From assembly GCA_965112735.1 (NCBI GenBank), contig OZ218950.1:1984001-2048000 (forward strand): a DNA stretch of 64,000 bases, read 5' to 3'. Made by a program: the position numbers and the translations under genes. Within the stretch, counting starts at the first letter, position 1, and every line of letters begins with the position of its first letter. Source of the DNA: Phaeosaccion multiseriatum (lineage: Eukaryota; Protista; Ochrophyta, other classes). The notes under the pieces were generated by a model. That model was not told the DNA's origin and made no database searches. It worked only from the letters and a program-made list of their open reading frames with translations. Below, piece after piece: positions 291 through 38,223 of this stretch.

Positions 291-3200
291 ATGGTACACA
301 GGCAGGCTTTGACGGCCGCGGTGGTGCTCGTGACATGCCACGCAGTCGCGGGCTTCGCGGTTCCCACTGCGTCGCGGGTGTCGGTGGGATCGCCGGCAGG
401 GCTCAGGCCATCGTCCATCTTTATTGCGTCACAGACCTCCGGACTTCGGGGCGGAGGGAGCGCGAGGTCGCTGCGGATGGAAGCCAGCGACTCGCACTTC
501 GAGCTGCTAGTCATCGGGGGAGGGTCGGGGGGCATTGCATGCGCCAAGAGAGCGGCTGGGTACGGAGCGAAGGTGAGAGGGACTGAATAAGCGGTGTCTG
601 GCCCTCCGCCACACCGCGCCTACCTACGTGACGCCGAGCTTGCGTATGCAGGCAACAGGCAGTGAAACGTGCCCCTGACTCGATGAGCGCTCTGCTGTGC
701 CGCCCTTGCCCCTGCCGTGTCCCTCTCGACAACAGGTTGGGCTGGTGGAGAAGCAAGCATTGGGAGGCACCTGCGTCAACGTTGGTTGCGTGCCCAAGAA
801 AGTGAGGAGCAGGATAGTGTTCATGCGTGAGAAGCGCTTCCCGTCCTGTCTTTGTCTCTGCGATGCTCCTCCTTTCTCCTCCTCCTCCTCCTCCTCCTCC
901 TCCGCGTCCTCACTGTCCTACCACCACCTCCCCCCCGTCGGCACTGTCCTCCTACCACCACCCTCCCTCCCTCCTCCTCCTCCTCCTCCTCCTCCTCTCT
1001 CCTCCTCCTCTTTCCCCTCCTCCTTCCATCCTCCTCCTTAACGGCCCTTTGTACTGGCCCTTTGCACTGTAAGGTTATGTGGAACGCTGCCACGGTCAAC
1101 GAGATCATCACCGAGGCCAAGCACTTTGGCTACAAAGTGGACGATTACCAGTTCGACTGGAACTTCCTCAAGCAACTCAGGGACAAGTATATCACGAGGC
1201 TCAATGGCATTTACGCCAACGGCCTTGACAGCACCAACGTGCAGCGCATCGAAGGAGTAAGTGTGTGTGTGTGTGTGTCTGTCGTTCTGAGCTGTGTAGA
1301 ATGGAAACTGCCTCCTCGCTCCCTCCTCAACTCCCCCGCTCCCTCACTCCCTCTCGTCTGCAGTTTGCGTCATTCAAAGACGCCACCACCGTCAACGTGG
1401 AAGGGAAGGAGCTCACCGCGGATCACATTGTAGTGGCTGTCGGAGGCAAGCCGACTATGCCGGACCTGCCCGGAGTGGAGCACTGCATTTCTAGCAACGG
1501 ATTCTTCGAGCTCGAGGAGCAGGTGAGGGAGGAAGGGAGGGAGGGACGGAGGGAGGGAGGGAGGAGGGCATGAGGAGAGTTGGCAGTGGATGGCAGTGGA
1601 TCGGGAGGGATGGGAGGGGAGTGGGACAAGTCAAGTAGCTAAGTCCGTGACATCTGACGGGCATGCGTCTCCCCCTACCCCCCCCAACTCTCTCTCCCCT
1701 GTTGTGCGTCCTCGTCTACTGCTACTGCTACCGCTCTTGTTGGTGCTGTCTCACCAACTGCTGCTTACGATGGTCTGGGTCCGTCCCTACCCCTCTCCTG
1801 TCATTCCTCAGCCCAAGAAGGTGGCAGTGATCGGAGCCGGGTACATTGCAGTCGAGCTGGCCGGCGTGTTCCAGGCCCTTCACAGCGACACTACCCTCCT
1901 TGTGCGCAAAGAGACCGCCCTGTCGAGCTTCGATGACATGATCAAGGAAGAGCTTGACGCTGAGATGAAAAAGGCCGGTATGACGGTCAAGAACCACTCC
2001 AAGTGAGTGAGAGGCGCGTGGACTCAGGCTTCGAGGGGGGGGGGGGGAGGGAGGAGGGCCTCGTCCCGCTTCTCCCCTTCCTCCTCTCCTCCTCCTCCCC
2101 TTCCTCCCCTTCCTCCTCCCCCTCCTCCTCCTCCTCCTCCTGCTCCTCCTCCTCCTCCTCCTCCTCCTCCTCCTCCGCCTCCTCCTCCTCCTCCTCCTCC
2201 TCCTCCTCCTCCTCCTCCTCCTCCTAACCTCTCCTTCCTCCCCCCTGTACGCTCCTCTGCTCTTGACCGCTCCCACTCGTGTCCATACACGCTCCCCCCC
2301 CCATAGCACGGCCAAGATCGTCAAGGACGAAGCTACCGGACTGATGAGCTTGGAGCTCGAATCGGGAGAGACGCTCGAGGGCTTTGATTGTGTGCTCATG
2401 GCGGTAGGAAGGGGCCCCCTCACGGAGAAGCTGAACTTGGGCGATGTACGTAATAGCGAGAGGGAGGGAGGTGGCGAGAGAGGGGCATGGTGACTGCTCT
2501 GGTACTGCTGTTGCACTGCTGTTCAAGACCCCCTCTCCCTCTCTCCACTCACTCACTCACTCTCTCTCACTCTCATTCTTTTTCTCTTTCGCTCTCTCTC
2601 TTACTCTCTCTCTCTTCTCCCTCTCCCACTCCTTCTCTTAACTCTCACTCTCTCTCTATCGTATTGTTCTGTACTTAACCTCTCCCCCCTTGCTCGGGTG
2701 TTGCCTGCTTCACTACAACCTAATCCCCCTCCTTTTCTCCCTCACCCCTCCAGGCCGGTGTGGAGGTGGACCAGAATGGATTCATCAAGGTCGATGACTT
2801 CCAAAACACCAACGTAGAGGGGGTGTACGCACTCGGCGACGTTATCGACAGACATGTGGACCTTACCCCCATGGCCATCGCGGCAGGCCGAAGACTTGCA
2901 GACAGGTAAGTAGTGGTGCGGAAGGAGGAAGAAGGAAGGCAGGAGAGATCAAGGCGACTACGAGCGAGATGTTTGCTGTATGTTGGGTCTGTTCCTGTCG
3001 GCCGTCAAAGCATACTACATCTCCACCACCCTCTGACTACCGTACGCACCCACTTACCTCCCCCCCTCTCTCCCTCCCTTCCTTCCTCCCTCCCTCCCTC
3101 TCTCCCTCCCAACCCCTCTCACCCTCCCTCCCTCCCTCCCTCCCCCCTCTCTCTCCCTGCCTCCCCGTCCCTAGACTGTTCAACGGGGACAAGGACGCCA

Positions 3201-4500
3201 AGGCTGACTACACAAACGTGCCCACCGCCATCTTCTCGCACCCGCCTATTGGCGTGTGTGGACTTACGGAGGGAGAGGCAAGGGAGAAGTACGGAGATGA
3301 TGGTGAGAAGGGAAGGGAGGGTGTGGGAGGGGACGGATGGGAAGGGGGGGGAAGGGGAAGGTGAAGAGAAGGGAATGGGAAGGGGCAGGGGAAGAGAAGG
3401 GAAAGGAAAGGGGAGGGGAGGGGAGGCGAGGGAAGGGGCAGGGGAGGGAGAGAGAAGGGCAAGGGGCGGGAAAGGAAGAGAAGAGAAGGGAAAGGCAAAG
3501 AAGGGGCAGGGATCATATGCATCACATGCTCACTCTCCTCCCTCCCCCTCCCTCCCTCCCCTCCCCTCCCTACCTTCCTCCCTCCCTCCCGTCTCGCTGC
3601 CTTCTCGCTTTCCTTTCCAATTCATTTCTTCATCCTGTGCTTTGTTGCATTACTGACGACTCACTGACTCACTGTCCTATGGCCGTGTGCTCCATTTTGC
3701 TCTTTGTTGTATTTCTATGGTAATGTACTCCGCAGCCATTAAGGTGTATAAGTCGAGGTTCACAAATCTGTGGTACGGCCCCTGGGACATGGAACCCGAG
3801 GACAAGCCCAAAACGGTGAGAGGACACTCGAGAGGAGGAAGGGAAGAGAAAAAAGACTTCAGAATAGAAGTACACACATACACGCTCACACACACAAACC
3901 CATTGTCCACCGAGTTGCTTTCCCTCCCTCCCTCTCTCACCCCCCCCCCCCCCCTTCCTCTCTCCCCCCCCTCTCTTGAACAGGCCATGAAGCTTGTGTG
4001 TGTAGGCGAGGATGAGAAGGTGGTGGGTCTGCATAGCATCGGCATGGGCAGCGATGAACTCCTCCAGGGGTTCGGCATCGCCATGAAGATGGGGGCCACC
4101 AAGGTACAGGCATATGGGGGGACTGAGCGACGACTCACTGACTCACTGACTCACTGACTCACTGAATGACTGCCTCATTGACTGTCTGATCGACGGACAG
4201 ATTGGCGGACTGACTGACTCACTGACTGACTGACTGACGGGCTGGCTCATTGACTGACTGATTGATGGAATGACTGATTCCCTCACTGACTGACTGACTG
4301 ACTCACGGACTTACTGACCTCCCTCCCTCCCCCATCCCTTCATGTACATATATATACATATATATTCCTCTTGTCCTTCTCCCCCCCACTCATCGTAACG
4401 CAACGAACAGGCCGACTTTGACAGCTGTGTGGCCATTCACCCAACCGCTGCGGAGGAGCTCGTCACTTTAGCCCCCTGGGGGAAGAGTGGGCAGAGCTAA
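291..4500 (+). CDS. GSR: Glutathione reductase, probably plastid-targeted, 11 exons (291-572, 736-801, 1074-1256, 1364-1522, 1812-2002, 2307-2445, 2754-2905, 3175-3302, 3736-3815, 3984-4103, 4411-4500)
   Basis: FAD-binding VIGGGSGG, redox-active [18 protein letters not shown]-binding [20 protein letters not shown] and the C-terminal HPTAAEE motif. All introns are GT-AG and phase-consistent. The N-terminus [21 protein letters not shown]|FAVPT resembles an ochrophyte bipartite presequence. Confidence 0.96.
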
Positions 4501-20455: not shown

Positions 20456-22324
20456 TCAGCCGCTGCTCGTCGCCTTTTCCCAATCCTCGAAAGTCTGGAT
20501 CGTCTTGGCGGACACGGATGGAGCAATGTGCTTCATTGCTGCCACAACGTCTGAAGCTGTCACCGCCCGAAGGTCCTCCTCCCTCGCGCTCAGCACCCCG
20601 ATACCGAGCTCCCGAATGGGCATCATGGCTGCTTCTTTGCACAGCTGAGTGAGGGAGTGAGGGAGGGAGGGAGTGACGGAGTCGGTGAGGGAGTGGGTGA
20701 AGGAGTGAACAGGGAGGGAGGGAGGGAGGGAGGAAGGGAGGGAGGGAGGGAGTGAGAGCGTGAGGGAAGGAGTAAGGGAGTGAGCAAGAGAGGGAATGAG
20801 TGAATGAATGAGTGAGTGAGGGAGTGATTGAGTGAGTGAGTGAGTGAGTGAGTGAGTGAGTGAGTGAGTGGGTGAGTGAGTGAGTGAGTGAGTGAGTGAG
20901 TGAGTAAATGAGTGGATATCGAAGGCCTAGAAGCGGCCTACCTGTGTCAAGTCGCTGCAGCTGTACAACTCCGTCCTAGTTGCGAGACTGGTCACCTCCT
21001 TGTCCGACAGACAGCTCCCAAGGAGACTCACCAACAGCTCCCTCCTCGTCTCGCTCGAGGGCAGGGGCACGTAGATACGCTTCGCCATCCTTCGCAGCAC
21101 CGCTTCATCGAGGTCCATGGGAAGATTGGTGGCTCCCATGAAGAGGATTCGGTCTTTGCTGTCCCCACCCATCCCGTCCAGCTGAACCATAAACTCCGTT
21201 TTGAGTCTCCGGGAAGCCTCGTGCTCCTGGTCGCCCCTTGCAGAGAGGATAGAGTCAATCTCATCTAAAAAGATGACGGCAGGCTGCCTCTCACGCGCCA
21301 CTTTAAACAGCGCCCTGACCATCTTTTCCCCCTCTCCCAAGAATTTGCTTGTAATTGAGGCGGCGCTGACGCAAAAGAAGGCGTAACCGGAGCTGCTGGC
21401 CACCGCCTTGGCGAGGAGCGTCTTACCAGTCCCCGGGGGCCCGTACAGTAGGATGCCTTTGGGCGGTTCGCGGAGACCCGTAAAGAGATCAGGGCGAAGG
21501 GCAGGCAATACAACAGCCTCTTGTAGCATGCGTTTTTGTTCGGAGAGTCCACTGATGGAGTCCCAAGTCACTTCCCTCAGAGAGCTGTCCAGCATCTCAT
21601 CGAGGACGGTCTGCTCCATGCTGTCAGCGGCTCTGGCAGCGACGCCGGTACCGGCACCCGGCCTTCCCATGCTGCCATTGGCTCGTCTTGGTGGCGACCT
21701 GTTTCCGCCCCTACTGCTGGCAGTTCCGCCTCTCGCATCCGATGAGTGAGAGGTTTTGCCTCTGCTGGCACTTGTGCCAGTCACCCCACGGCCACGCGCA
21801 GCAGCTGCGGTGGAATGTGTCGTTGCCCGCGGAGGAGAAGGAGGAGGGGGTGCCCTCCTCTTTTCCAAGGAGCCCCTCCCCACCAACGAGAGGCTGTCCA
21901 CTCCATAACCCGTCCTTGCCTGCCCCCCTGCCCCTGCTGCTGCTGCTTTCCCCACCGGCCTTGATCCTGCTTCCTTTGCCTGTGCTTGCGCCCCCAAAAG
22001 GGCCTTGAGCCTCTCCGCCTGTGTCATGTAGTGTTTAATCTCCTCCTCGAGGTTTTGCTTTAGGCTACTGCCACCTGCGGCGTTCTTATAGTGCTCCAAG
22101 AGGCCCTCAATCCCAGTTTTGTAGTGTTCCAGCGCTGCGGCCCAAGCCCCCGTCTCTTCGGCCCTCCTTCCCCGCGCGAGAGAGTCCAGCATCTCTTGAC
22201 CATCCCTGCTCAAACCCCCTCCCTGGCGCCGTCCTCGAGCAGGGCTCGTTGGCCGCCCTCTGTGGTCCCTAGGGGGACTGGGGCTTGGCTTCCCACTGCC
22301 CAGCCACTTATCGAAGAACGACAT
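20456..22324 (-). CDS. SPAST: Spastin-like microtubule-severing AAA+ ATPase with a MIT domain (exons 22324-20942, 20644-20456)
   Basis: N-terminal MIT-like helices, LPALRPDLFTGLR, Walker A GPPGTGKT, Walker B IFLDEID and EHEASRRLKTEF. Exon 2 reads LCKEAAMMPIREL...PSVS...FEDW. Confidence 0.9.
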
Positions 22325-23400
22325 TGGCCCCTAGGCCCCACAAAGAGCAACCAAGGGAGGGAACGAAGAGGTGATGAAATGAAATTGCAGTTAAAAAGGG
22401 GGGAGGTTAATGCATGAATAAAGCGAACGACAACAATAATCACAGGCTGGCGACACAAAATGATAATCGTCCACTAAGCTCCCTCTGACCCTTCGCTGCG
22501 CTCACTGTGAAAGTGAGGCAGGAGAGAGCGCTGCAGCATGGACGGATCTTGATTTTTTTTTTTTCTCAATGGCCTTGGCATGCTGCTCGTCCCACCACAG
22601 CCATTCTGGCAAGCCAGCAGGCCTTCTGCCGGCGGCACCCTTAGACCTACATCAGAGCTTCTTCCGGGTGAAGTATGCGCATCCCCTCGTCCTGAGGCTG
22701 CAGCGGTGGGTCTTGCTGTGCCTCTTAGGTCGAGGCTGCAGAGGCGTCACAACTCCGACCACGCCTACTTCACCGTCTTCCCCGACGACACATTCAAGCA
22801 TCACTGGACTGTTGCTCATGCCAGCACATCCGACCTTCCTCAAGTTCTTCTACTCTTCCATCGCACCGTCGCCCTCCCCAACCACGGCCGCCTTCGTTTC
22901 GTACGACACGATCACGCGGAGGAACTTTGTCACTCTGCCTTCAACTGTGCTCTTCACGACCTCGGTGCCACCACCGTAATCGCACCCATCGCTCTCGCGC
23001 TCTACCCTCCGGACCTCCTCCCCCCGCGCGCTCGACGTCGGACTTTTCACTCCACACGTTTTTCATCTCTGTGCTGTTGCCGTCGGTCGAGTCTGCCCCG
23101 GGGTTCGGCAACTCCCTCTCAGCGCCTGGGGAGGAATTCGCCAACTCCGTCTTAGAGCCACAGCCGACGTGCCCATCGCCAGGACAGCTCGAGCAGCAGA
23201 GGCAGCTGAGAGAGGGGCCTGTGCCTTTGGTAGCAGCAACTGCTGCGGCTGGCCTGCGGCTGCGAGTAGCGCCGAGGCGTGCACCCTGCGGGAGCAAGTC
23301 TCTTCCCTCTCTTCGCAGGGGAGGACGCGTGCCTGATAGCGGTGCCAGGGGTCAACCGGCCACACTTCCCGATTAACCACGGCGGAAGAGGGCCTTTAAG

Positions 23401-29879: not shown

Positions 29880-30280
29880 GCAACTGCCGCTCTCAGCCAG
29901 GAAAGCACGGGGATGGCGCCGCTCTACGCTTTGTTCGGCAGACACCCGCCGGTGCCTTTACAGGCGATGTTTCCTGCTCTGGTGGAGGACGGGTTGTTCT
30001 CGTTCGCCTCGGCTTGGGTACATGAGCTGCGGGCACGCCTTGCTTGTTGCTGTGGCTGGCTGCGGAGGTGGCTGGCTGGCTGGTTAACGGGAGACGCTGC
30101 GAATACGACGGGAGGTTGCAGCTGAAGAATGCCTCACACCACTGGCTAACGCCCTTGCAACCAGGGTCCAAGGTGATGTTGTATCGCCCTGGCACAGCCG
30201 CACAGCAAGAGGGGGAAACACTCGAAGGGCCTCCGTCCGCGCAGCCCAAGGCTCTGCAGCATTCGTCCATGCTGCAGCGC
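29880..30280 (+). mobile_element. Degenerate Ty3/Gypsy integrase C-terminal fragment
   Basis: QESTGMAPLYALFGRHP matches the integrase end motif. VNGRRCEYDGRLQLKN...PGSKVMLYR...KALQHS aligns with the 37.4-37.7 kb copy. It is frameshifted. Confidence 0.75.
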
Positions 30281-31044
30281 TCTCTCCTGCCTCACTCTCA
30301 CAGTGAGCGCAGCGAAGGGTCAGAGGGAGCTTATACGAACCTCTTGACCCTAGACCTAACCACCCAGCATTTCACAACACAACGTTTCACTTTGTACGGC
30401 GGACTAAATCAAATGCCGTTTCGTTAGTGGGTTGAACGTGTCGCCAGCCTGTGATTGTTTTTATCTCTGGAAGGGTCCAAAGTGTGTTAGTATATATAAT
30501 ATAAAAAAAAAAGAAAGGGGGAAATCGTGCCTTTGAAGAATAACGGAATGACCGTAATGACCGTAGTATGCGGGGCATGAAAGCATCGCCTCCGGCCTCT
30601 TCTCTCACGGACAGGCTGAACTTGAATGCGATATTTTGGTGGAAAGCGTGACGAGGTATTGCCTCCGGTGGCACAAGCCATCTCTGCCTGGAGAGGGTTA
30701 AGGTAAGAGCCGAAACGAGAGGGGGGCTGCTGCTCTTTGTCCCTTCTGCGCTCTCTCTGTATCAAACAGGATTGTACTGGGGGTGCTGTAGATGGCTTTC
30801 TTCGTATGCCGTGCTGATGCGGCACTGTTATGCTGTTCCGTATCATCGGGCAGCTCCTACTGACCCTTTCTCACCGCCACATGACTTAAGGGCCTGCTAT
30901 TCATCCTCCTCCTCTCTTTCCTCCTCCTCTCTTCCCTCGTTTCCCCTGCGCTACGCCGCTCTGTCTCGGCTCATGACTTGCTGCCCTGCATGGCCAGGCA
31001 TACACAACCGTGTAGCGCCCAAGGAAACAACAAACACCACCCCC

Positions 31045-34000
31045 ATGGTTGCCATGAAGACCAAGGTCGCTACTCTAGCCGCCTTCCTGGCCTTCATCTC
31101 CCCCTTCGCCGGTGGCGACGTGGCGACCGTTGATTCCACGCGGAATCAAACGTCGCCTGAGCATATCCCTTACAGTAGCGCTGACACGCCTGTCTGGACG
31201 GAGCCTCCTACCACAATCGAGCACTCCGACTCGTCTGATTGGACGGACTCCGCTGGCTCGGAGGAGCCTTCAAGCGTGGACTCGCATGTCTGGACCGGGC
31301 ATCCAAAGGCCACCGAGCCCCCCACGCATGCACCCAGGTGGACTGCCTACCCAACACCTGAGCCTACCTGGAGCGCCCCTCCGACCCCCGAACCCACCTG
31401 GACGGACGCTCCTACCCCGACGCCGATGATGAAGGTAAGGTATCACACGGATGGCCGCACCGTGCTTTGCCTATCGAGTGCTTGTGCCAGACTGTCTCCT
31501 CATGGTCTAAGCCTCGCCCTCTCCCCTCCACTTCCTTACGGTCTTGGCTCCCCCAACAACAGCCGCCCACTCCCACCCCGGTCTGGACGGAGCCTCCCAC
31601 TGACGCTCCCGTCTGGACGGAGCCTCCCACTCACCCCCCTCTCTGGACGGAGCCCCCCATCGATGGGCCGGTCTGGACGGAGCCACCCACTGACCCTCCG
31701 GTCTGGACGGAGCCTCCCACTGACGCTCCCGTCTGGACGGAGCCCCCCACTCACCCACCTGTCTGGACGGAGCCCCCCACCGATGCGCCGGTCTGGACGG
31801 AGCCTCCCACTGACCCTCCGGTCTGGACGGAGCCTCCCACTGACGCTCCCGTCTGGACGGAGCCTCCCACCCACCCCCCCGTCTGGACGGAGCCTCCCAC
31901 TCAACCCCCGGTCTGGACGGAGCCCCCCACCGATGCGCCGGTCTGGACGGAGCCTCCTACTGACGCTCCCGTCTGGACGGAGCCGCCCACCCCTGCACCC
32001 GTGTGGACGGAGCCGCCCACTCACCCACCGGTCTGGACGGAGCCGCCCACCCCTGCACCCGTCTGGACGGAGCCGCCCACCCCTGCACCCGTCTGGACGG
32101 AGCCGCCCACCCCTGCACCCGTGTGGACGGAGCCGCCCACTCACCCACCGGTCTGGACGGAGCCACCCACCCCTGCACCCATCTGGACGGAGCCGCCCAC
32201 CCCTGCACCCGTGTGGACGGAGCCGCCCACTCACCCACCGGTCTGGACGGAGCCGCCCACCCCTGCACCCGTATGGACGGAGCCGCCCACTCACCCACCG
32301 GTCTGGACGGAGCCGCCCACCCCTGCACCCGTCTGGACGGAGCCGCCCACCCCTGCACCCGTGTGGACGGAGCCGCCCACCCCTGCACCCGTCTGGACGG
32401 AGCCGCCCACCCCTGCACCCGTGTGGACGGAGCCGCCCACCCCTGCACCCGTGTGGACGGAGCCGCCCACTCACCCACCGGTCTGGACGGAGCCGCCCAC
32501 CCCTGCACCCGTGTGGACGGAGCCGCCCACCCCTGCACCCGTGTGGACGGAGCCGCCCACTCACCCACCTGTCTGGACGGAGCCGCCCACCCCTGCACCC
32601 GTGTGGACGGAGCCGCCCACCCCTGCACCCGTGTGGACGGAGCCGCCCACCCCTGCACCCGTGTGGACGGAGCCGCCCACCCCTGCACCCGTGTGGACGG
32701 AGCCGCCCACTCACCCACCGGTCTGGACGGAGCCGCCCACCCCTGCACCCGTCTGGACGGAGCCGCCCACCCCTGCACCCGTGTGGACGGAGCCGCCCAC
32801 TCACCCACCTGTCTGGACGGAGCCGCCCACCCCTGCACCCGTGTGGACGGAGCCGCCCACCCCTGCACCCGTGTGGACGGAGCCGCCCACTCACCCCCCG
32901 GTCTGGACGGAGCCGCCCACCCCTGCACCCGTTTGGACGGAGCCGCCCACCCCTGCACCCGTGTGGACGGAGCCGCCCACTCACCCACCGGTCTGGACGG
33001 AGCCGCCCACTCACCCACCTGTCTGGACGGAGCCGCCCACTCACCCACCGGTCTGGACGGAGCCGCCCACTCACCCCCCGGTCTGGACGGAGCCTCCCAC
33101 TCACCCCCCGGTCTGGACGGAGCCTCCCACTCACCCCCCGGTCTGGACGGAGCCTCCCACTCACCCACCGGTCTGGACGGAGCCGCCCACCCACCCCCCT
33201 GTCTGGACGGAGCCGCCCACTGACGCTCCGGTCTGGACGGAGCCTCCCACTCACCCCCCGGTCTGGACGGAGCCGCCCACCCCTGCACCCGTCTGGACGG
33301 AGCCGCCCACCCACCCACCCGTCTGGACGGAGCCCCCCACTCACCCACCGGTCTGGACGGAGCCGCCCGCTCACCCTCCGGTCTGGACGGAACCTCCCAC
33401 TCACCCCCCGGTCTGGACGGAGCCGCCCACCCATCCACCGGTCTGGACGGAACCCCCCACTCACCCACCGGTCTGGACGGAGCCTCCCACTCACCCACCT
33501 GTCTGGACGGAACCCCCCACTCACCCACCGGTCTGGACGGAGCCTCCCACTCACCCCCCGGTCTGGACGGAGCCGCCCACTCACCCACCGGTCTGGACGG
33601 AGCCGCCCACTCACCCACCGGTCTGGACGGAGCCGCCCACCCACCCACCGGTCTGGACGGAGCCGCCCACCCACCCACCGGTCTGGACGGAGCCTCCCAC
33701 CCACCCTCCGGTCTGGACGGAACCCCCCACTCACCCACCGGTCTGGACGGAGCCTCCCACTCACCCACCGGTCTGGACGGAGCCGCCCACTCACCCCCCG
33801 GTCTGGACGGAGCCGCCCACTCACCCACCGGTCTGGACGGAGCCGCCCACTCACCCCCCGGTCTGGACGGAGCCGCCCACTCACCCCCCGGTCTGGACGG
33901 AGCCTCCCACCCACCCCCCGGTCTGGACGGAGCCGCCCACCCACCCCCCGGTCTGGACGGAGCCGCCCACCCACCCCCCGGTCTGGACGGAGCCTCCCAC

Positions 34001-35123
34001 TCACCCACCGGTCTGGATGGAGCCTCCCACTCACCCACCGGTCTGGACGGAGCCCCCCACTCACCCACCGGTCTGGACGGAGCCGCCCACTCACCCTCCG
34101 GTCTGGACGGAGCCTCCCACTCACCCACCGGTCTGGACGGAGCCACCCACCCACGCTCCCGTCTGGACGGAGCCTCCCACTCACCCACCGGTCTGGACGG
34201 AGCCTCCCACTGATGCTCCCGCGTGGACGGAGCCGCCCACTCACCCTCCGGTCTGGACGGAGCCGCCCACTCACCCACCGGTCTGGACGGAGCCGCCCAC
34301 TCACCCACCGGTCTGGACGGAGCCGCCCACTCACCCCCCGGTCTGGACGGAGCCGCCCACCCACCCACCGGTCTGGACGGAGCCGCCCACTCACCCTCCG
34401 GTCTGGACGGAGCCTCCCACCCACCCTCCGGTCTGGACGGAACCCCCCACTCACCCCCCGGTCTGGACGGAGCCTCCCACTCACCCACCGGTCTGGACGG
34501 AGCCGCCCACACACCCACCCGTCTGGACGGAGCCGCCCACTCACCCCCCGGTCTGGACGGAGCCGCCGACCCACCCCCCTGTCTGGACGGAGCCGCCCAC
34601 TTACGCTCCCGTCTGGACGGAGCCTCCCACTCACCCACCGGTCTGGACGGAGCCTCCCGCTGACGCTCCCGTCTGGACGGAACCCCCCACTCACCCCCCT
34701 CTCTGGACGGAGCCTCCCACCCACGCTCCCGTCTGGACGGAGCCTCCCACTGACCCTCCGGTCTGGACGGAGCCTCCCACTGACGCTCCGGTCTGGACGG
34801 AGCCTCCCACGCATCCACCAGCCAAGAAGGACCTTCCCACCCACGATCCCCTCTGGACGAAGCCTCCCACTCACCCACCGGTCTGGACTGACCCTCCCAC
34901 TGACGCTCCCGTCTGGACAGAGCATCCCACAGACACGCCAACGCCCGCCTGGACTGACTTTTTCACGGACGCGCCCACGTCGGACTGGAAGGAGCTTCCC
35001 ACTCACGCCCCAACGCCAGCCTGGACGGAGCTACCCACGCGCACACCCACGGGAGGACAGCTAGGCGAAGAACCATACGAAGCGGAGGAGGGGCCGGGGG
35101 GCGCCGAGGCGCGGCAACCATAA
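31045..35123 (+). CDS. Secreted Pro/Thr/Trp-rich tandem-repeat protein, about 1316 aa (exons 31045-31434, 31563-35123)
   Basis: Signal peptide MKTKVATLAAFLAFISPFAGG. A phase-0 intron (gtaagg...caacag) joins exon 1 to the VWTEPPT frame. Exon 1 already has degenerate WTEPPT units. Variation in the array is largely synonymous in this frame. Confidence 0.85.
31581..34820 (+). repeat. 30-bp coding minisatellite, about 108 units, no indels
   Basis: gtctggacggagccgcccactcacccaccg-type units hold perfect register, two per 60-bp line over 54 lines. Confidence 0.99.
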
Positions 35124-35343
35124 GGCCTTAAGGCTACACTTGTGAAGTTGATTTGTAATATACATGCTCTTTTATCGCCCTCCCCTCCATGCCGCGCTCT
35201 CTATCTCCGCATGACTGTCTTCGCCAGTCGCACCACCCTAGAGGTGTCTCTTGGCCCGAGGGTCCCTCTCATTGACGTGTGTGCTGTCTCCATTTATTCG
35301 ATTGATCCGATAGAGAGAAGTAGAGAGGGAGAGAGAGAGAAAC

Positions 35344-35395
<52 letters not shown>

Positions 35396-35747
35396 AGAGA
35401 TAGAGGGAGAGGGAGAGAGAGATAGAGAAAGAGTTTTTTTAGCGCTGCGAGATGCCAGACTGCCACCTCGATAAGTGAAAACGGGGTTCACAGCGGGGTT
35501 GTTGTCAACCTGTGTGTGTGGACTTCCGTTCTGAAATGTTGACTCTTCGTGCTGGAGAAGGAAGGAGCTAGGGAGGCGTATCCTGGGCCCCTGTACGTGT
35601 TGAACCGTACCGACGCTGCGCCGCCCGTGCTGCGTGCTTCGATAACCAGGCAAAAGGGCATTCTGTAGCGCCCGCCGCTGCGCTGAGTTTTTGGGCGCTG
35701 CTGGAGAGAGAAGTAGCGTGGCCAAGAGGCGCTTTGGCCTCTTTTCC

Positions 35748-37047
35748 CGTTGCAAGGCAGTCTCAGTGCTCTGCTGCTGCGTCACTGGCCCGCGAGCCCC
35801 ACTCCAAAGCTCGATGTCAGCACAGCTGCTGTGGTTCGGCCAACCTCGCTGAGCGTTGCAGGACAGCCTCATTGCTCTGCTGCTGCTGCGTCACTGTGTC
35901 GTGAGCTCCACTCGACAGCTCGATGTCATTGCACGGCTGCTGTGCTTCGACCAAGCTCGCGGAGCGTTGCAGGGCCGCCTCAGTGCTCTGCGGCTGCTGC
36001 GTCACTGTGTCGTGAGCTCCACTCGCAGCTCCATTGCGCGGCTGCTGTGCTTTGACCTAGCTCGCTGAGCGTTGCAAGGCAGCCTCATTGCTCTGCTGCT
36101 GTGGCCCTCTCTCGTCCGCTCCACTTTACCACTCCATGTCATTGCACTGCTGCTGTGCTTCGACCAAGCTCACTGAGCGTTGCAGGGCAGCCTCAGTGCT
36201 CTGCTGCTGCGTCATTGGCTCGTGAGCTCCACTCGACCGCTCCATGTCCTTGCACGGCTGCTGTGCTTCGATCAAGCTCGCGAAGCGTTGCAGGGCCGCC
36301 TCAGTGCTCTGCGGCTTCGTCACTGTCTCGTGAGCTTCACTCGACACCTCGATGTCCTTGCACTCCTGCTGTACTTCGCCCAAGCTCGCTAAGCGTTGCA
36401 GGGCAGCCAGAGAGCTCTGCTGGTGCGTCACTGGCTCGTGAGCTCCACTCGACAGCTCCATGTCATTGCACTGCTGCTGGGCTTCGACCAAGCTCACTGA
36501 GCGTTGTAGGGCAGCCTCAGTGCTCTGCTGCTGTGTCGTGAGCTCCACTCGACCGCTCCATGTCCTTGCACGGCTGCTGTGCTTCGATCAAGCTCGCGGA
36601 GAGTTTCAGGGCCGCCTCAGTGCTCTGCGGCTTCGTCACTGTCTCGTGAGCTTCACTCGACGGCTCGATGTCCTTGCACTGCTGCTGTACTTCGCCCAAG
36701 CTCGCTGAGCGTTGCAGGGCAGTCACAGTGCTCTGCTGCTGCGTCACTGGCTCGTGAGGTCCACTCGACAGCTCGATGTCATTGCACTGCTGCTGTGCTT
36801 CGACCAAGCTCGCTGAGCGTTTGCAGGGCAGCCTCATTGCTCTGCTGCTGCTGTGTCATTGTCACCGGAGCTCCACTCGACAGCTCGATGCCGCGCCCTG
36901 CTTCGACGCAGGTCCTGAGCGTTACAGGGCAGCCTCATTTCTCTGCTGCTGCTGCGTCACTGTCTCGTCCGCTCCGCTCGACAGCTCGATGTCATTGAAC
37001 TGCTGCGGTGCTTCGACCAAGCTCGCTGAGCGTTGCAGGGCAGCCTC
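35748..37047. repeat. About 108-bp tandem repeat, about 12 diverged units; the minus strand reads as a 36-aa coiled-coil-like repeat with frameshifts
   Basis: cgttgcagggcagcctcagtgctctgctgctgcgtcactgg... recurs at 35748, 35854, 35965, 36070, 36178, 36286, 36394, 36502 and onward to 37031. Confidence 0.93.
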
Positions 37048-38223
37048 ATAAGGTCATGCAGCGCAGCACAGTGTACCTGTCCATGAAACGAGTGCGAGAC
37101 GATGAATTGGAGCAGCTGCATCGGGCGTACCATAGAGACTTGACAAAGCCGTTCATCGATGGTGTGAGCGAGCTGCCTTCCGGCCTTGCTTCCGGCAGGG
37201 TTCGCCAGGTATCATATATCCGCTGATGTTCGCCGCAGTGGGCTACCAGCTCGATGCAGGAGCGGCGTAGCTTAGAGCTGGACGAGGTGAGTGACGGGAG
37301 AGTGCCCACGCGAGCAAGGATTGTGAAATTCCGCTGGCGCAAGGCCACGGGGCTGCCGCTGCGGCGAGAGTACAATGTTCGGTGGGCAGTGGCGGAGGGC
37401 GGCACGTTCCAGACCTGGGAGTGGGCGGAGTTGGCCGCAGCGGCAGAGGTCGTCAACGGGCGGCGCAGTGAGTACCTGGGGCGGTTGCAGCTGAAAAACC
37501 TCTCGCGGCAGTGGCCAGTCCCGCCAACCCCGGGAAAGAAGGTGTGGTTGTATAGGGGGGAGGAGCAGGCCACGGTCCAAGAGGATGAGCGCCAGGAAGA
37601 CGGAGGTGACGGGTCCACGGGGACACAGCGCCCTCGCCTCAAAGCACTTCGGCACTCCTGGGATGGACCGTACAAGGTCTTAGCATGGCCGTCCCACCCT
37701 GTGTATTGCGGCCAGCATGGGACTGTGAGCGAGGAGCACTATGACGTGTTGCAGCGCAGCACGGTGTATTTGGCAGTGCCGCGCGTGCGCGGTCGGGGAG
37801 TGGAGGCGCGGGAGCAGGCCTACCACCTGGAGTTGACGAAACCGTATGTGGATGGGGTCAGTGAGCGGCCACCGGGATTGCCAGACGGTTTCGCACGGTA
37901 TCACATCCAGTGCGTGGTGTTCGACCCACTGGACCACCAGCCCGCAGTAGGAGCACCGGCGCCTGGAGTCCGGCGATATGCGTGCGAATAGTGGGGGGGA
38001 GGGTCCGCAGCTGGACAAGGTCGTCCGGCTGCGGTTTCGCAAAGCCACGGGGTTCCCCGTGCGGAAGGAGTATGGGGTGCGATGGAGGCTCAAGGCGGGG
38101 GGGTCGTTCCACACGTGGGAATGGGAGGACTGGCTGGAAGAGCGGGGTTATTATAGCACGCTCTTGGAGTTTGAGAAGGCGCTGCCGATGGAGGCGCTGG
38201 ACCCGAGCACGAACGTGAAATGA
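37048..38223 (+). mobile_element. Two tandem 3' pol fragments of a chromodomain-containing Ty3/Gypsy retrotransposon
   Basis: GPY/F module PGKKVWLYR...KALRHSWDGPYKVL. Chromodomain-like segments ARIVKFRWRK...EYNVRW...QTWEW and DKVVRLRFRK...EYGVRW...HTWEWEDWL...LLEFEK. Stops and frameshifts are present. Confidence 0.8.

Follow-up and report, generated by a model that had tools for sequence, protein, structure and literature searches.

What does a long tandem array of a 30-nucleotide unit encode, if it encodes anything, when nearly all of its reading frames are open? The question is raised by a locus of the alga Phaeosaccion multiseriatum, at positions 31045-35123 of a 64,000-nucleotide stretch (hereafter the window; contig 1:1984001-2048000, GenBank OZ218950.1, in an assembly of 67.1 Mb in 22 contigs, GCA_965112735.1). 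Judging by the sequence, the locus is most likely an intact, lineage-specific, two-exon gene of this ochrophyte (golden-brown) alga, and we put the probability that it encodes a real secreted repeat protein at roughly 0.85. In the predicted gene model, exon 1 (31045..31434, forward strand, 130 codons) supplies on translation the start codon, a signal peptide and degenerate W-T/P-T motifs (VWTEPPTT, TWSAPPTPEPTWTDAPTPTPMMK); a phase 0 intron of 128 nt (31435..31562, forward strand) follows, with the sequence GTAAGG, a pyrimidine tract and CAG; and exon 2 (31563..35123, forward strand, 1186 codons plus the stop at 35121-35123) holds, by translation and composition, the array, decayed repeats and an acidic tail (GEEPYEAEEGPGGAEARQP).

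Tandem Repeats Finder describes a single array at 31561-34930, with a period of 30, 112.3 copies, 87% matches and no indels. Read in register, 111 of the 112 slots of 30 nt at 31581-34940 on the forward strand encode x-W-T-E-P-P-T-[H/P/D]-[P/A]-P, the pattern x-W-[T/M]-[E/K/D]-[P/H]-P being kept in 111 of these 112 consecutive slots; a single slot, at 34821-34850, has decayed and now reads AKKDLPTHDP. The original prediction, made from the sequence before this analysis, had announced about 108 exact decapeptides with invariant Trp and Glu. The array itself stands, with 111 in-register units, but its exactness does not: only 62 units are VWTEPPTHPP, alongside 24 VWTEPPTPAP, nine VWTEPPTDAP and three VWTEPPTDPP, the remainder being singletons. 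Likewise, Trp is indeed present in all 111 units, but Glu in 109. The string WTEPP occurs exactly in 107 array units and once more in exon 1. Along the array, the ends are heterogeneous (D and H types); TPAP and THPP units occur together in the first third, beyond which THPP predominates. At the nucleotide level there are 54 distinct units, of which 37 are singletons, and neighbouring units differ by 3.3-3.6 nt compared with about 5.4 nt for distant pairs. This is the divergence pattern of an old minisatellite with local homogenization. The number of distinct units and singletons, together with the likeness of neighbours, makes collapse or inflation during assembly unlikely, and the same numbers speak against an array produced by misassembly or by neutral expansion in the very recent past.

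Such a minisatellite architecture, homogenized locally, is what one would expect of a length-variable surface coat or decoy, in which variation in copy number would allow escape from grazers, viruses or epibionts. Copy-number variation is known from the tandem-repeat surface proteins of many microbes (PMC2566889). We nevertheless consider this explanation unlikely, as the predicted protein has no membrane or wall anchor and six of the ten positions of the unit are strongly conserved, which suggests that the sequence matters beyond its length.

Is this conservation that of a peptide or of a DNA unit? The unit is free of stops in five of its six frames, with open reading frames (ORFs) of 994-1430 codons on both strands, so the presence of an ORF by itself proves nothing. 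The distribution of variation is more informative. In the frame encoding VWTEPPT, third codon positions hold 72% of the minor-allele weight, and variable first and second positions are confined to codons 8-9 (H/P/D and P/A). Using Nei–Gojobori counting over all pairs among 110 units, this frame gives proportions of synonymous (pS) and nonsynonymous (pN) differences of 0.39 and 0.06, respectively, that is a pN/pS of 0.16. The other two sense frames behave quite differently, with pS 0.084 and pN 0.179 for frame +1 (pN/pS 2.1) and pS 0.054 and pN 0.177 for frame +2 (pN/pS 3.3), as do two of the antisense frames (pS 0.095 and 0.040, pN 0.170 and 0.188, pN/pS 1.8 and 4.7, respectively). Outside the VWTEPPT frame, a low ratio is found only in one antisense frame (pS 0.283, pN 0.068, pN/pS 0.24), which is the one carrying a stop. 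As the variation among units is mostly synonymous in the VWTEPPT frame only, there is a strong indication, short of a formal test, that the VWTEPPT peptide is under purifying selection. The claims that DNA variants gather at wobble positions and in the last triplet of residues, and that this reflects selection on the peptide, are thus borne out, and the distribution of variants over codon positions, a check that had been set beforehand, is not random.

These results also bear on the suggestion that the locus amounts to a dead gene or to a GC-rich minisatellite without coding function, whose long frames are open merely because the unit lacks stops. Besides the five open frames across the array, it could be invoked in favour of this suggestion that the window is rich in micro- and minisatellites and that no expressed-sequence match was found in the databases searched. 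However, a non-coding array would not be expected to show substitutions strongly biased to the synonymous sites of one frame only. Moreover, the decayed repeats at both ends stay in frame and keep the W-T/P-T pattern in the protein, and paralogues show conservation of the signal peptide and of the splice sites (see below). A non-coding array therefore seems very unlikely to us, and we continue with the reading of the locus as a gene for a secreted repeat protein.

The two exons were analysed separately. The predicted signal peptide, MVAMKTKVATLAAFLAFISPFAGG (31045..31116, forward strand), forms the sole hydrophobic window of the protein, and its cleavage would fall after approximately residue 24 by the -3/-1 rule. 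Almost the same leader, AMKVKAATVAAFLAFISPFAG, occurs in a small paralogue on contig 9, a finding in favour of the start codon as well as of a functional signal peptide, as had been predicted. Cleavage after AGG would put Asp at +1. In plastid-directed proteins of such algae a Phe is typical at this position, unlike the Asp here. At the other end, C-terminal decayed repeats (TPAWTDFFTDAPTSDWKELPTHAPTPAWTELPTRTP) and then the acidic tail (34941..35120, forward strand) finish the chain without a hydrophobic anchor. Indeed, no transmembrane or glycosylphosphatidylinositol (GPI) signal was found in the predicted protein, the C-terminus of which is acidic and hydrophilic. A single N-glycosylation sequon (NQT) lies in exon 1.

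The predicted protein has a size of 145 kDa, with about 1,110 residues in tandem decapeptides. Exon 2 is composed of 37.4% Pro, 19.6% Thr, 10% Glu, 9.6% Trp, 9% Val, 6% His, 4.2% Ala and 0.1% Ser, with Pro, Ala, Ser and Thr together reaching about 61%; its 1186 residues include no Cys, one Ser, two Tyr and four Lys. With 139 Asp and Glu against six Lys and Arg (isoelectric point of about 4.5) and a consensus unit devoid of Lys and Arg, the protein is strongly polyanionic, a point absent from the original prediction. AlphaFold2 gave no secondary structure for 200 residues (predicted local distance difference test 63, predicted template-modelling score 0.13), and this featureless model fits an unfolded or extended chain. 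The absence of Cys, of a globular domain and of a membrane or GPI anchor, all three claimed beforehand, thus agrees with the composition, the model and the hydrophobicity of the chain. The composition is also informative about whether the gene could encode a polyprotein precursor, cut into approximately 110 small bioactive peptides with a signalling, antimicrobial or mineral-directing role. The units are very uniform, as such a precursor would have them, but they contain no basic, dibasic or RxL site, there being only the six Lys and Arg in 1186 residues, and their Pro-rich junctions would be poor protease substrates; we regard this possibility as highly improbable.

We may wonder at this stage whether the gene is unique. 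Over the whole genome, a DNA pattern for VWT[D/E]PP has 125 forward matches and one reverse match, compared with six and one for the reversed control; the giant gene accounts for over 100 of the matches, and about 20 lie elsewhere. A PVWTA variant pattern has 68 matches in the genome, against one in the control. On the strength of these sequence matches, the giant gene belongs to a genome-private family built on P-V-W-T-[E/A]-[P/A]-P-T, which the original prediction had missed. It has the signal peptide, the repeated P-V-W-T-[E/A/D]-[P/A]-P-T, the exon end MK/GT (the stroke marks the border of the exon) and the homologous intron by which the family was defined.

The paralogues are of three kinds. 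On contig 9 at about 3.163 Mb (3162083-3165286), small genes in tandem combine the leader of the giant gene with two or three copies of VW[T/I]EPP and a tail of the KSKNKKSKK type, while at about 2.857-2.859 Mb of contig 11 a 13-residue unit, PVWTEPPVEPTPV, is repeated 12 times and a second type, PTPHPTDAPVWVAPP, is also found, both with Lys-rich tails. These small genes (contig 9:3162083-3165286; contig 11:2854000-2862000) are tandemly duplicated, with the signal peptide of the giant gene and 2-12 VWTEPP-type motifs, and their tails are rich in Lys and Ser (KSKNKKSKK..., KEGKKNKKAKKSNSKDKK...), resembling the lysine clusters of silaffins. On contigs 12 and 4, a signal peptide is followed by a Lys/Ser/Gly-rich stretch, by SPVWTDPP or PVWTATPTAA repeats and by a shared Cys-rich module, C-x-P-D-x-C-[IV]-A-x-C-A-x-Y-G-E-T-C-Y-T-A-x-x-Y-C (contig 12:2989000-2996000, approximately 2931-3963; contig 4:560000-567000, approximately 3343-4100). 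For these paralogues Pfam gave nothing above the cut-off, and a word search with the exon of the contig 12 module found no relative. Finally, contigs 5, 6 and 9 contain large cassette genes, in which dozens of micro-exons of 14-16 residues, PVWTAAPTPAPTMK and PTRAPTDAPTPAPTMK, alternate with introns of approximately 160-250 nt. These loci (contig 9:3222500-3232499 and contig 5:4105500-4115499, both on the reverse strand, and contig 6:2690000-2695000) show AG/GT borders at their micro-exons, of which contig 9 has at least 30 within 7 kb and contig 5 at least 34 within 10 kb. The peptides encoded by the cassette genes hardly vary, but identity at third codon positions is only about 85%.

With its paralogues the giant gene shares the core P-V-W-T-x-x-P-T-x-A-P, the near-identical leader (contig 9), the MK/GT exon end and the homologous intron. 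In the paralogues, however, the motif is amplified exon by exon or kept at 2-12 copies, and their products are basic, or have Lys-rich tails or the Cys-rich module, whereas that of the giant gene is acidic. The VWTEPPTPAP unit of the giant gene differs at only two positions from VWTAAPTPAP, which follows a leading Pro in the cassette exon; this closeness makes the giant gene the member of the family in which the motif has been amplified inside a single exon. By predicted charge, it is the acidic member of an otherwise basic or Lys-tailed family.

The Lys/Ser-rich tracts of the paralogues, in recalling silaffins, raise the question of a part in a biomineral (silica) matrix, in the manner of diatom silaffins and cingulins. 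The W-type cingulins of diatoms are, moreover, rich in Trp. However, the protein itself is acidic and almost devoid of Lys and Ser, and no match to a silicon transporter (PF03842) was found in a six-frame search of the genome. The Lys/Ser tracts, RxL site and silicifying host that go with silaffins and cingulins were thus not found for the repeat protein, and a silica matrix seems as improbable as the polyprotein.

The paralogues further inform the exon structure. Exon 1 ends in ...PTPMMK directly before GTAAGG; over its last 14 residues it corresponds to the cassette exon PVWTAAPTPAPTMK, with which it also has the donor ATGAAG/GT in common. The exons of the contig 5 paralogue are small, all end in ...PTMK/GT and start after ...ACAG/CC, and intron 1 of the giant gene aligns with the introns between them, with conserved blocks, an invariant GT and the shared acceptor ACAG/CC. 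Since the exon 1 motifs VWTEPPTT and TWTDAPTPTP lie in a different frame from the array, a change of frame is required, and removal of intron 1 moves the reading from the exon 1 frame into the selected repeat frame. An unspliced gene running from the ATG at 31045 through to 35064, with an Arg/Ser/Pro/Leu-rich product (RSGRSLPLT-type units), has in its favour a frame free of stops over 30772-35064 but is the least probable explanation of all, given that pN/pS is 2.1 in that frame and its peptide is not conserved, that the VWTEPP motifs of exon 1 match the other frame of the array, and that the paralogues share both the intron sequence and the donor following MK.

Outside this genome, searches for relatives of the two-exon gene returned little. 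With both exons and pieces of them, Pfam gave nothing above the cut-off, Extensin_1 reaching 19.2-23.3 bits against a cut-off of 105. A word search with exon 2 against 5.8 billion proteins found no homologue; its one match, a membrane protein of Diplonema with a Thr/Ala/Pro (TSAP-type) repeat lacking Trp, is compositional only. A full HMMER scan of 400 array residues against 1.84 billion cluster representatives yielded 622 matches, of which the best 150 were inspected: these are other periodic low-complexity repeats, such as TEGPTT, EWEEPERPAP, LWTSPPEAMN or VWTDRTHPEE, and were discarded as relatives, and none of these best 150 of 622 contains W-[T/S]-x-[P/A]-P twice. The ESM Atlas gave nothing above 0.81, and a literature search on the motif strings found no paper carrying them. 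That the repeat belongs to no named family, as had been proposed, is in agreement with all of these searches (Pfam, the 5.8 billion proteins, the best 150 of the 622 HMMER matches, the ESM Atlas and the literature). In sequence terms, the gene is the founding member of a putative new family within a known kind, the secreted Pro-rich tandem-repeat matrix proteins.

At the DNA level, a strict two-unit pattern had no match in 241 million metagenome records, and a looser pattern picked up 41 contigs in the same records, most of them with one chance match or a Pro-rich linker of bacteria. Four contigs (Ga0308025_1002450, Ga0308013_10001876, Ga0308025_1003542 and Ga0308013_10025018) encode an 11-residue unit repeated two to six times in tandem, which reads DPWTEPPVATM in three of them and DPWTEPPVETM in the remaining one; a long tract rich in Ser, Asp and Lys (SSDSKDS...) comes next. 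The contig 11 paralogue has the same WTEPPV core. A few metagenome contigs with six DPWTEPPVATM copies are of polar marine origin, and the likeness in these polar marine contigs may be a convergence.

Comparison with known systems helps to situate the predicted protein. Hydroxyproline-rich glycoproteins and arabinogalactan-protein-like (AGP-like) glycoproteins have been reported in brown algae (PMC12223506). The repeat protein resembles them as a secreted chain of short tandem units rich in Pro, Thr and Ala, without a fold and presumed to carry hydroxyproline (Hyp) and O-glycans. By composition it would approach AGPs, with its 61% of Pro, Ala, Ser and Thr and with TP and AP dipeptides in its TPAP and TDAP units, although this criterion is compositional only. 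AGPs carry type II arabinogalactan on Hyp and often a GPI signal; the repeat protein lacks a C-terminal hydrophobic signal, and GT31 and prolyl 4-hydroxylase-type genes are present in the genome. The periodic Trp recalls the periodic Tyr of PPVYK-type proline-rich proteins. Extensins carry arabinosides on Hyp, and prolyl-hydroxylase-type domains do occur in the genome. In contrast to extensins, the repeat protein has no Ser-Pro(3-5) motif or SPPP and almost no Ser or Tyr, lacking the Tyr cross-linking motifs of that group, and its aromatic residue is Trp; it is also polyanionic, lacks a GPI signal and shows no sequence homology to them, the PF02095 score being below the cut-off. With mucins it shares a long tandem Pro/Thr-rich domain behind a signal peptide, but mucins are densely O-glycosylated and, when gel-forming, have Cys-rich flanking domains, and the repeat protein has no Cys at all.

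A further resemblance of design is found in an unrelated organism. Mussel foot protein-1, a coating protein of an attachment structure, is a long array of a decapeptide containing Pro-Pro-Thr, with fixed aromatic residues (PMC9999432). Here there would likewise be 111 secreted, unfolded decapeptides, each with one Trp and four or five Pro around a Pro-Pro-Thr core. On the other hand, the mussel protein is polycationic (two Lys per unit) and relies on Tyr/Dopa chemistry, whereas the repeat protein is polyanionic (one Glu per unit) with Trp and His, and the likeness is an analogy of design only. Acidic repeats based on Glu and Pro are also known from the EP and GPEET procyclins of Trypanosoma brucei, thought to form a rod-like extended polyanion on the cell exterior (PMC4339879), but these consist of 25-30 dipeptide repeats, are GPI-anchored, lack Trp and have no homology to the repeat protein. 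In another stramenopile, the oomycete Phytophthora, secreted proteins with repeats, among them the mucin-like adhesion protein CAR90, are thought to be adhesive (PMC3091767). They are similarly secreted tandem-repeat proteins containing Thr and Pro, although with another unit, a far lower copy number, no periodic Trp and no detected sequence similarity. The repeat protein belongs to none of these groups.

What, then, could such a protein do? We lean towards an extracellular structural or adhesive role. The protein would enter the secretory pathway, where its Pro residues may be hydroxylated and its Thr and/or Hyp residues O-glycosylated. Pro is found at +2/+3 or -1 of both Thr residues of the unit, surroundings that in animals promote O-glycosylation, and the genome contains at least 11 matches to prolyl-hydroxylase-type 2-oxoglutarate oxygenases and three to GT31. 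The Pro content, charge repulsion and glycans would keep the chain extended, in a polyproline II-like conformation, with a fully extended length of up to about 340 nm (approximately 1,110 residues at 0.31 nm each). It could then be a polymer of the extracellular matrix with a structural, spacing or adhesive role, whether in a wall, in mucilage or in an attachment glue. Trp residues spaced every 3.1 nm could make weak repeated contacts with polysaccharides or partner proteins, and Glu and His could form cation-bridged links to anionic polysaccharides or to basic members of the family, although any one specific binding chemistry, taken individually, is doubtful. The original interpretation is partly supported: the gene and its general nature hold up, and the Trp stacking or cross-linking, the metal binding by His and Glu and the place in a wall, scale, stalk or adhesive matrix that it put forward stay at the level of proposals.

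Several points weigh against this interpretation. The support for splicing of 31435-31562 comes only from comparison with the paralogues, and pN/pS among units is indicative rather than a formal test, the units of an array under concerted evolution being non-independent. Glycosylation, the polyproline II conformation and every binding property are deduced from composition alone. Prolyl hydroxylases and GT31 enzymes are, moreover, widespread, and their presence does not make the repeat protein a substrate of either.

A broader proposal, which we offer as a long shot, is that an undescribed extracellular material would be made of matched components, namely the polyanionic (VWTEPPTHPP)n protein and its basic relatives within the family. 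These basic partners would be the micro-exon proteins made of PVWTAAPTPAPTMK and PTRAPTDAPTPAPTMK units and the products of the small genes with Lys/Ser-rich tails. Assembly might proceed by charge pairing, together with Trp–cation and Trp–Pro contacts, into a coacervate-type glue, a sheath or a scale matrix, and the components would have originated from one peptide motif amplified in two ways, within an exon and exon by exon.

Extracellular proteins of ochrophytes other than diatoms are almost unknown, and among them the repeat protein offers a clear and testable case of a candidate polymer, structural or adhesive. One selected decapeptide with an invariant Trp every ten residues also offers a simple design for peptide work on polyproline rods, aromatic–carbohydrate contacts and metal bridging. 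Furthermore, a single motif multiplied both by an intra-exon minisatellite and by duplication of micro-exons with their introns makes a tidy system in which to study the growth of repeat proteins. It should be noted that the gene is an orphan encoding a low-complexity protein, of a kind common in protists, and that its importance hinges on the extracellular location of its product.

The window surrounding the gene has about 58% G+C, is rich in microsatellites and contains split genes for kinase, ankyrin and EF-hand proteins and for a spastin-type AAA ATPase. The last of these, an ORF with MIT and AAA domains at 20927-22324 on the reverse strand, has its best named matches in brown algae (63-65% identity), Tribonema (60%) and oomycetes (59%), these identities covering the AAA half of the ORF. 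The matches place the host among the ochrophyte stramenopiles, of which the protein database contains no close relative of this alga. An (AG)n microsatellite (35312..35433, forward strand) begins about 190 nt downstream of the stop codon of the giant gene, probably in or near its 3' untranslated region. At 35748-37048, 0.6 kb downstream of the gene, a 108-nt tandem repeat extends over about 12 copies (80% matches, 5% indels); on the reverse strand it encodes a 36-residue unit (SASLVEAQQQCNDMELSSGAHEPVTQQQSTEAALQR), which frameshifts split into ORFs of 106-192 codons, and it may represent a satellite or, alternatively, a repeat gene in decay. Two ORFs flanking the giant gene, at 30044-30427 and 37254-37991 (both on the forward strand), have a common motif, VNGRR-EY-GRLQLKN...PG-KV-LYR, but show no DNA similarity to one another and match nothing in Pfam. 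A single family of mobile elements may have left them as old relics, and a location of the gene inside a transposon was discarded given that the flanks share no DNA similarity. Lastly, a 70-nt segment is present both at 30264-30333 and, in the opposite orientation, at 22475-22544, with 98.6% identity, and may be a small dispersed repeat.

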